A stretch of DNA of 63,345 nt, filler included, from Bigelowiella natans CCMP2755 (taxonomy: Eukaryota > Protista > Cercozoa): the NCBI GenBank assembly GCA_000320545.1. It is 7 parts of 7 records of this genome, joined end to end, with 100 filler letters (N's around TTAATTAATTAA, not from the genome) between each part and the next. Parts side by side here need not be neighbours in the genome. Positions count along the whole stretch, not along the records: positions 16,085 to 24,498 come from ADNK01001498.1; 6 more parts are not named here. One strand, given 5' to 3'. Each line of letters begins with the position of its first letter. The first letter of the stretch is position 1. The notes beneath the pieces are model-generated. The model searched no databases. It was not told the origin of the DNA and was given only the letters and a program-made list of their open reading frames with translations. A program made the translations under genes and the position numbers. Below are positions 21,484-22,460 of this stretch, in pieces.

Positions 21484-22460
21484 GCTTCCAGCCGGCGCGC
21501 CCAAGGCCGACGTGAACTCACCGTCCACTTGTCGGGACGCCTGCTCCCCTTCGTGATCGCAATGACGGGGCCTTGGGTGCCTGCTGCGTGGCTTCTTCGC
21601 AAAGAGCCTTCACACCAGGTCGCACCAAGAACTGTTCAATGCTGACCTTGTTTGAACAAAAATTCACCAATTCAAACGACTTCTTCCACTTCTCTTTCCC
21701 TTGACCTTTCGTTGCTGCCAACAACACAGCCAAGAGTGCCCATTGATCCGTGTTGGTGTTGCACAGTTGACCTCAGCAGCTTCTTGTGACAACTTTCGAG
21801 ACCACTCTTTGTCAGACAAAGCAACCAGTTTGTCGTGCGCTTGAGTGGCATGCGACGTGTTTCCTCTCATGCCTGTCTCCCATGTGGTTCTGGCGCATGC
21901 AGTTTTTGATCAACGCTTTGTTCATTGTTCATCATTGTTCATTCTCTCTTTGGCTGAGGTGAAACTTGAATCGATGAGTTTCTGGGCTGCCTCCGCCGAG
22001 TGCTCGTGACTGCCAAAGCCATCAACAGTCTTCACGACGGGAAACTCGGTGAAGAATTCGCACACACGATCGCACTTGCGAACGGAAGAAGGCAACTTTT
22101 CGCACGTCTTGTGCAACGTGAGACGGATGTGATGAAGAATCAAATTTTTTCAATGGTCATCCTGATGTAGCTGTGCAATGTGCAACGTGTCATCGTTCAC
22201 GAAGCCGTTTGGGGTCACGAACGTGGTGCTTCCAGCCGGCGCGCCCAAGGCCGACGTGAACTCATCCGTCCACTTGTCGGGACGCCTGCTCCCCTTCGTG
22301 ATCGCAATGACTGGGCCTTGGGTGCCTGCTGCGTCGCCGCAGCGATGAAGTGTGAGAGAGAGCCCAGAGTCTTCGCCAATCTTGTCACAATGAACAATGA
22401 ACAATGAACAAAGCGTTGATCAAAAACTGCATGCGCCAGAACCACATGGGAGACAGGCAT
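21484..22460 (-). pseudogene. Decayed, internally rearranged pogo/DDE_1-like transposase
   Basis: Minus-strand translation SLTLHRCGDAAGTQGPVIAITKG...GAPAGSTTFVTPNGFVNDDT continues after a short insertion as TLHKTCEKL...VKTVDGFGSH (DDE_1 motifs xxNG[W/F]M and DGxxSH); direct duplication 21484-21589/22228-22334; inverted duplication 21869-21931/22398-22460. Confidence 0.7.
22119..22180 (+). mobile_element. Solo TIR fragment of the MITE family, inserted in the transposase remnant
   Basis: Matches the TIRs at 40230-40310 and 58483/59262; flanked by a direct repeat tgtgcaacgtg (22110-22120, 22179-22189). Confidence 0.75.

Follow-up and report, generated by a model that had tools for sequence, protein, structure and literature searches.

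Of the 231 de novo mutations that mutation-accumulation lines of Bigelowiella natans gained within integrated giant-virus and virophage regions, 230 were A>G or T>C changes placed on TpA dinucleotides, and these regions mutated at ~1000 times the genomic background (Mettrop et al., bioRxiv 2026, 10.64898/2026.01.13.699255). The text of that preprint states that all GC-biased mutations fall on TpA. It also reports 124 clusters in the genome that are depleted in TpA and enriched in CpA+TpG, where a cluster is at least three consecutive 1-kb windows with a Rho_TpA of 0.43 or less and a Rho_CpA+TpG of at least 1.52 (10.64898/2026.01.13.699255). DDE-endonuclease and RT domains are enriched among the TpA-depleted coding sequences, and the process proposed by the authors is adenine deamination, with an ADAT2-like candidate (10.64898/2026.01.13.699255).

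Fungal RIP likewise uses dinucleotide-specific transitions to degrade repeated or mobile DNA in place, leaving aberrant islands with sharp borders. However, RIP changes C to T at CpA, and so its islands are AT-rich and have an excess of TpA. ADAR hyper-editing and the ADAT2/3 (TadA-type) enzymes share the A>G outcome and a preference for U or T directly 5' of the edited A, but these enzymes act on RNA. ADARs are restricted to animals and favor a 3' G, with UAG as a preferred triplet. The natural tRNA substrates of ADAT2/3 include U33-A34-G35, and U33 is invariant before A34.

Here, we describe a locus within a window of 63,345 nucleotides (filler included) from B. natans CCMP2755, the window being that whole stretch of DNA. 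It lies on the piece at positions 16085-24498, which comes from ADNK01001498.1. We find that the locus is a genuine case of the TpA-specific hypermutation already described in the 2026 preprint. Our reading, to which we give a probability of roughly 0.85, is that a TpA-specific A:T>G:C process acted over transposon debris and that it later depleted a 60-nt insertion within that debris as well. The depleted island and its two neighbors are the following:

20452-20630, + strand: transition zone, a TA-poor open reading frame (ORF) resembling the last exon of the host gene (exon call read from the sequence).
20631-22495, no strand assigned: TpA-depleted, TG/CA-enriched island between the end of the host-gene ORF and the insertion resembling an LTR retrotransposon.
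22496-24498, + strand: LTR-retrotransposon-like element with normal TpA, with a gag ORF bearing a CCHC knuckle from 22859 and no Pfam match.

The island (1865 nt) contains 5 TpA, against 104.8 +/- 7.9 expected from 5000 base shuffles (minimum 75). Even if a TA obs/exp of 0.8 is assumed, the deficit has a Poisson P of ~1e-29, and the "island" of the first-pass annotation is therefore real, being far beyond chance. When both strands are folded together, obs/exp is 0.05 for TA and 1.59 for TG/CA. TA is at 0.80 to the left of the island and at 1.00 to its right, TG/CA is at 1.02 on either side, and neither flank has an excess of TA. Within the island, CpG is normal (0.90) and AA is not depleted (obs/exp 1.25). 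The + strand carries 194 TG and 175 CA, which indicates no strand bias. The right edge is abrupt, at 22495/22496, and the left edge fades across 20452-20630. The process is regional, specific to TpA, strand-symmetric, and restricted to transitions, and its erasure of TA is near-total.

Both published thresholds for depletion and enrichment are surpassed by the island, with values of 0.05 and 1.59. Its length is 1.87 kb, or ~2.04 kb with the transition zone; at ~1.9-2.0 kb, it falls short of three consecutive 1-kb windows, bounded on its right by the TA-normal retrotransposon, inside which the piece ends. As in the published regions, the changes are exclusively TA>TG/CA, loss of TpA is coupled to gain of CpA+TpG at the kilobase scale, and the affected DNA is foreign or mobile, including DDE endonuclease genes. 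The host is likewise an MMETSP marine protist. At this locus, the mobile origin is evident from a DDE-transposase pseudogene, a second fragment of it, and an insertion with a target-site duplication. The targets differ, however: the preprint deals mainly with inserts of a giant virus (186 kb) and a virophage (25 kb), whereas this locus is ~2 kb of DNA-transposon debris. Depletion here is essentially complete (rho 0.05), in contrast to 0.45 in the giant-virus region, and the preprint has neither an analysis of neighboring-base context nor nested insertions that serve as time markers. The giant-virus region is also single-copy, which sets the published process apart from RIP (10.64898/2026.01.13.699255). 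The TpA excess and CpA/TpG deficit that characterize RIP are reversed in the island (TA 0.05, TG/CA 1.59), where A:T>G:C changes at TpA form its mirror image.

The piece is eukaryotic in character, being intron-rich, with microsatellites and short exons separated by GT-AG introns (read from the sequence) and a GC content of ~49%. The gene structure and the GC content are compatible with B. natans. The host gene has long repeat tracts in its introns and on its flanks, made of (TA)n, (GT)n, (CAG/TAG)n, and poly-C/poly-G (16085-16215, 17515-17555, 17690-17730, and 18415-18445). Given these (TA)n runs, TpA is not eliminated genome-wide.

The transition zone retains 4 TA (gTAc, cTAc, cTAc, and cTAt). 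Its ORF is rich in TG/CA and encodes a hydrophobic tail before the stop at 20628-20630, with TA almost only in C/G-flanked contexts. It looks as if the process spills over into the end of the host gene. On the other side, the retrotransposon-like element marks the sharp right edge of the island and runs off the end of the piece. A is heavily over-represented on its coding strand (AT skew up to 0.57), and its TpA is normal even though it adjoins the TpA-free island. An untouched neighbor of this kind is either younger than the depletion or not targeted by it, and the island may have been cut short by the retrotransposon.

Most of the recognizable content of the island derives from one transposase gene and from repeats around it:

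21484-21602, - strand: second, frameshifted fragment of the same transposase, a direct repeat of 22228-22337.
21799-22389, - strand: DDE-transposase pseudogene fragment in one frame, with stop codons and no Tyr codon (tblastn and phmmer).
21869-21932, + strand: left arm of a perfect 64-nt inverted repeat, within a 78-nt insertion of the transposase frame.
22397-22460, - strand: right arm of that repeat, where the transposase fragment is truncated at its 5' end.

The nearest proteins are the product of an MMETSP transcript (P0001, 99% identity) and a paralogue known as a UniParc-only entry (P0002, 90%), a pair that suggests a marine protist for which both a transcriptome and an older genome annotation exist. 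Relatives aligned to the piece by tblastn with E values of 1.5e-50 (P0002), 5e-21 (P0003), and 2.5e-17 (P0009), and an exhaustive phmmer search with an 84-residue piece of the pseudogene frame gave 51 matches. Relative to P0002, the frame is interrupted by two in-frame insertions, one of 69 nt (23 codons) and one of 78 nt. A search for homologous proteins with P0002 returned only P0002 itself, and no record was found of contigs encoding P0001 or P0002. The left 850 nt of the island (20631-21483) had no detectable homology to the transposase or to the other targets tried. Long ORFs in this part (up to 192 aa) are expected by chance, because TAA and TAG are nearly absent and TGA is almost the sole stop.

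The order of the NGDE, DGFGSH, and QAYD motifs, together with an N-terminal HTH_psq domain at the Pfam threshold in one relative (P0035), suggests by-eye resemblance to a pogo-like element. The order N-G-D-E ... D-G-x-x-S-H ... Q-x-Y-D resembles the DDE_1 pattern of pogo/Tigger-type DDE transposases. No member of the present family reaches any Pfam DDE model, DDE_1 or related, and the superfamily is assigned by eye. Among the island ORFs and the relatives of the transposase, no Pfam DDE family matched even at E <= 5; across nine island ORFs, the gag ORF, and fifteen relatives, Pfam returned no transposase or gag family.

Two marine metagenome contigs, L001 (1-4059) and L002 (1-4084), encode relatives of the transposase with 40-50% identity. 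Their TA rho is 0.28-0.71 (about 0.5), and their TG/CA values are 1.0-1.56. Judged from these contigs, the transposase family normally contains TA. Note that such values are within the ordinary range of eukaryotic coding sequence and do not bear either way on whether the process occurs in other organisms.

The first-pass annotation had singled out a "TIR copy" at 22119-22180, and the sequence there reads exactly as it was quoted. The base states are also as described, with TG at three of the named sites, CA at one, and a single TA left at 22168 (gTAg). The three copies used for comparison in the first-pass annotation are located outside the analyzed piece, and the count of four changed TpA in five is that of the annotation. 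Its parts are the following:

22111-22119, + strand: left copy of a 9-nt target-site duplication, GTGCAACGT (10 nt with an ambiguous T), by direct reading.
22120-22179, + strand: non-coding 60-nt insertion, the "TIR copy," with the repeated 9-10-mer on both sides.
22180-22188, + strand: right copy of the target-site duplication, GTGCAACGT, by direct reading.

P0001 and P0002 both lack exactly these 23 codons, and the 69 nt missing from P0001 correspond to the 60-nt insert plus one copy of the 9-nt repeat. We rejected an intron as the source of this difference, since no register of the repeat gives GT-AG or credible AT-AC boundaries. An empty site in P0001 and a filled site in the window, rather than splicing, is thus the best reading. 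The 60 nt are a genuine mobile-element end, flanked by a 9-10-nt target-site duplication. Within the analyzed piece, only one match to the 60-nt element was found with up to 3 mismatches allowed, and there is no second copy.

The nesting of these elements provides relative timing. Both P0001 and the window copy are free of Tyr, and yet they differ by the 60-nt insertion, which indicates that depletion of the transposase preceded the insertion. Provided that the inserted end brought TA with it, as the first-pass annotation says of its other copies, the process acted again later at the same locus. The insertion may also stem from a donor that had lost its TA beforehand. Within the island, neither the inverted repeat (64 nt, perfect) nor the direct repeat (97-100%) has any TG-versus-CA discordance, which means that these duplications are either younger than the depletion or never contained TA. 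Inheritance from source copies that were already depleted, rather than change in place, may account for part of the TA-free state.

The arms of the inverted repeat, separated by a 464-nt spacer, bracket the main transposase fragment. P0001 begins inside the right arm (22397-22460) and ends inside the left arm (21869-21932), so that both arms seem to be carried on one transcript, which could form a long hairpin. As a lead only, we point out that transcription of a unit with this 64-nt inverted repeat at its ends could yield double-stranded RNA.

The direction of change, TA>TG/CA, was correctly called in the first-pass annotation. It had been argued from TA being the majority state among copies. 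As logic, this carries little weight, because a RIP-like process would affect every copy in the same way, but the conclusion is nevertheless right: it is upheld by composition, by Tyr>His/Cys alignment columns, and by the de novo mutations in 10.64898/2026.01.13.699255. Tyr is absent from all 714 aa of P0002 and all 149 of P0001, compared with an average of 2.0% in 62 relatives, and His and Cys are raised in both proteins. Among the relatives, three alignment columns have Tyr more often than any other residue, with Phe no close second; in these columns, the copies from this genome read C, H/H, and C. These are TAY>CAY or TAY>TGY changes at sites where relatives from other sources have Tyr. For example, SITLYRCG in the relatives corresponds to ...LHRCG in the local copies. 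In the catalytic region, QAYDQ is represented by QAHD (codon CAC) in the window and by QACD in the paralogue P0002. One ancestral TAY has thus become CAY in the window and TGY in the paralogue, an outcome that change in the reverse direction cannot generate.

The first-pass annotation further held that TAG is spared, and this was only partly correct. All 5 survivors in the island are indeed CTAG (2 sites) or GTAG/CTAC (3 sites). Conversely, ATAG and TTAG are extinct, with 0 found where the densities in the flanks predict ~12. TAG is thus hit as well, and a fast context on either strand is enough for a TA to be lost. When the transition zone is included, 8 of 9 survivors have G/C as both neighbors, and TAG occurs on one strand in 8 of 9; the context rule rests on these 5 (or 9) surviving sites only.

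Published mutations follow the same order. In Table S2 of 10.64898/2026.01.13.699255, which lists each de novo mutation with its base triplet and which we tallied by hand after folding to the strand of the mutated A, the 235 changes comprise 74 TAA, 81 TAT, 57 TAC, and 23 TAG. TAG thus makes up ~10% of the TpA changes, compared with ~23% by base composition (a naive availability, not a count of sites). That TAG is the least-hit context in Table S2 matches the late survival of TAG-type sites at this locus. The words "context" and "trinucleotide" are absent from the text of the preprint, whose authors do not discuss neighboring bases (10.64898/2026.01.13.699255). A preference of TAW >= TAC > TAG argues against ADAR-like specificity, and it fits the natural U33-A34-N35 substrates of ADAT2/3 poorly. 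ADAR-type hyper-editing was rejected on this context, since TAG-type sites both survive here and are least hit in Table S2, and on taxonomy. Unlike the edits made by ADAR and ADAT enzymes, the changes at this locus are fixed in genomic DNA, in a transposon that has no RNA intermediate.

We propose the following explanation. The island is DNA-transposon debris lying between a host gene and a retrotransposon that is younger in this reading, and it is made up of two pogo-like DDE transposase fragments and small secondary insertions. A region-specific process would mutate A:T to G:C only at TpA, driven almost to completion in the debris, where a hit on the A of a given strand would yield TG and a hit on the A of the other strand CA. 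The 60-nt transposon end, presumably arriving with TA, would have entered a transposase gene that was already degraded, after which the same process would have removed four of the five TpA that the first-pass annotation counts in it. The slowest to mutate would be sites with G/C on both sides and TAG on at least one strand, and hence they would be the sole survivors. The simplest chemistry would be deamination, in DNA, of an adenine preceded by T, which is then read as G at the next replication, and some targeting signal would direct this deamination to foreign or repeated DNA.

Four other explanations have to be weighed against this one, two of which dispense with TpA mutation altogether. If polarity were reversed, the island copy would be ancestral, and the TA copies elsewhere would result from RIP-like C>T changes at CpA/TpG in repeats. 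CpA>TpA is the classical RIP signature, and as RIP affects all copies, a majority of TA is not decisive. It could also be argued that, in the minus-strand frame, two of the TA sites listed in the first-pass annotation would read TAG where the island reads CAG. We dropped these in-frame stops as an argument, because the 60 nt are a non-coding insertion that is absent from P0001 and P0002. It is not plausible that nearly 2 kb of heterogeneous sequence without function started out with a TA obs/exp of 0.05. The flanks have no TA excess, the Tyr columns read His or Cys (with one column divided between the two residues in different paralogues), and de novo mutations in B. natans run from TA to TG/CA (10.64898/2026.01.13.699255). 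We consider reversed polarity highly improbable. Selection or compositional constraint could instead remove TA by avoiding TA-target transposon insertion, UA-cleaving RNases, or stop codons. TpA is mildly under-represented in most genomes, and the metagenomic relatives of the transposase have TA rho values of 0.3-0.7. However, what is depleted here comprises a broken, stop-containing pseudogene, a frameshifted duplicate, and insertions that do not code; near-total depletion stops within a few bases at a transposon junction; and the missing TA reappear as excess TG and CA. Of all the explanations, we give this one the least credence.

The remaining two accept TpA as the target and differ in what happens to it. 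Error-prone repair synthesis of the polymerase-eta type (WA>WG) might be repeatedly recruited to these regions; the errors of this polymerase, known from somatic hypermutation, are A>G changes preferentially at TA and AA motifs. Such a process is contradicted by the AA content of the island, which is not depleted. It is equally at odds with the de novo changes, which fall on TpA, with only ~5 of 211 Table S2 entries for scaffold_10 in other contexts (ATG T>C three times, ATT T>C once, and one C>T, at GCA; 10.64898/2026.01.13.699255). It has very little chance of being correct. Modification of thymine is less improbable, even if it too is unlikely. TpA is its own reverse complement, and so deamination of the A after T and modification of the T before A, that is, A>G and T>C, are indistinguishable from sequence. 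A TET/JBP-type enzyme could convert the thymine of TpA to 5-hydroxymethyl- or 5-formyl-uracil, which mispairs with G and leads to T>C with no adenine deamination. In dinoflagellate DNA, 5-hydroxymethyluracil is reported to prefer TpA and TpC, which speaks for this route, as does the mismatch between the observed 3' context preference and the tRNA substrates of ADAT. On the other hand, neither our analysis nor the preprint gives any sign of such a base or enzyme in this organism, and the preprint found an ADAT2-like candidate (10.64898/2026.01.13.699255).

The A:T>G:C process at TpA that we favor may also have left a recognizable fingerprint: A/T-flanked TA is fully erased, TA between C/G with TAG on one strand survives, and the published mutations run TAA ~ TAT > TAC >> TAG. 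More tentatively, and with the odds against it, this fingerprint could be that of an undescribed DNA adenine deaminase or thymine modifier that is re-recruited to the same loci, maybe via inverted-repeat RNA. Re-recruitment is suggested by a younger insertion that sits in a depleted pseudogene and was depleted in turn.

Because the discovery is already public in a 2026 preprint, this locus mainly corroborates it. It adds a case in which a DNA transposon, not a virus, has lost nearly all its TA. It further adds polarization at the protein level that needs no other copies, through Tyr>His/Cys changes and their differing outcomes in paralogues, as well as nested-insertion timing at the locus. A context rule, with TAG the slowest, constrains candidate enzymes; the context observation drawn from Table S2 is a small addition to the published work. 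A mutator programmed to make A:T>G:C changes in foreign DNA, and at TpA alone, mirrors fungal RIP. It would represent a novel form of genome defense in eukaryotes, and the enzyme responsible could be of interest to evolutionary biology as well as for base editing.
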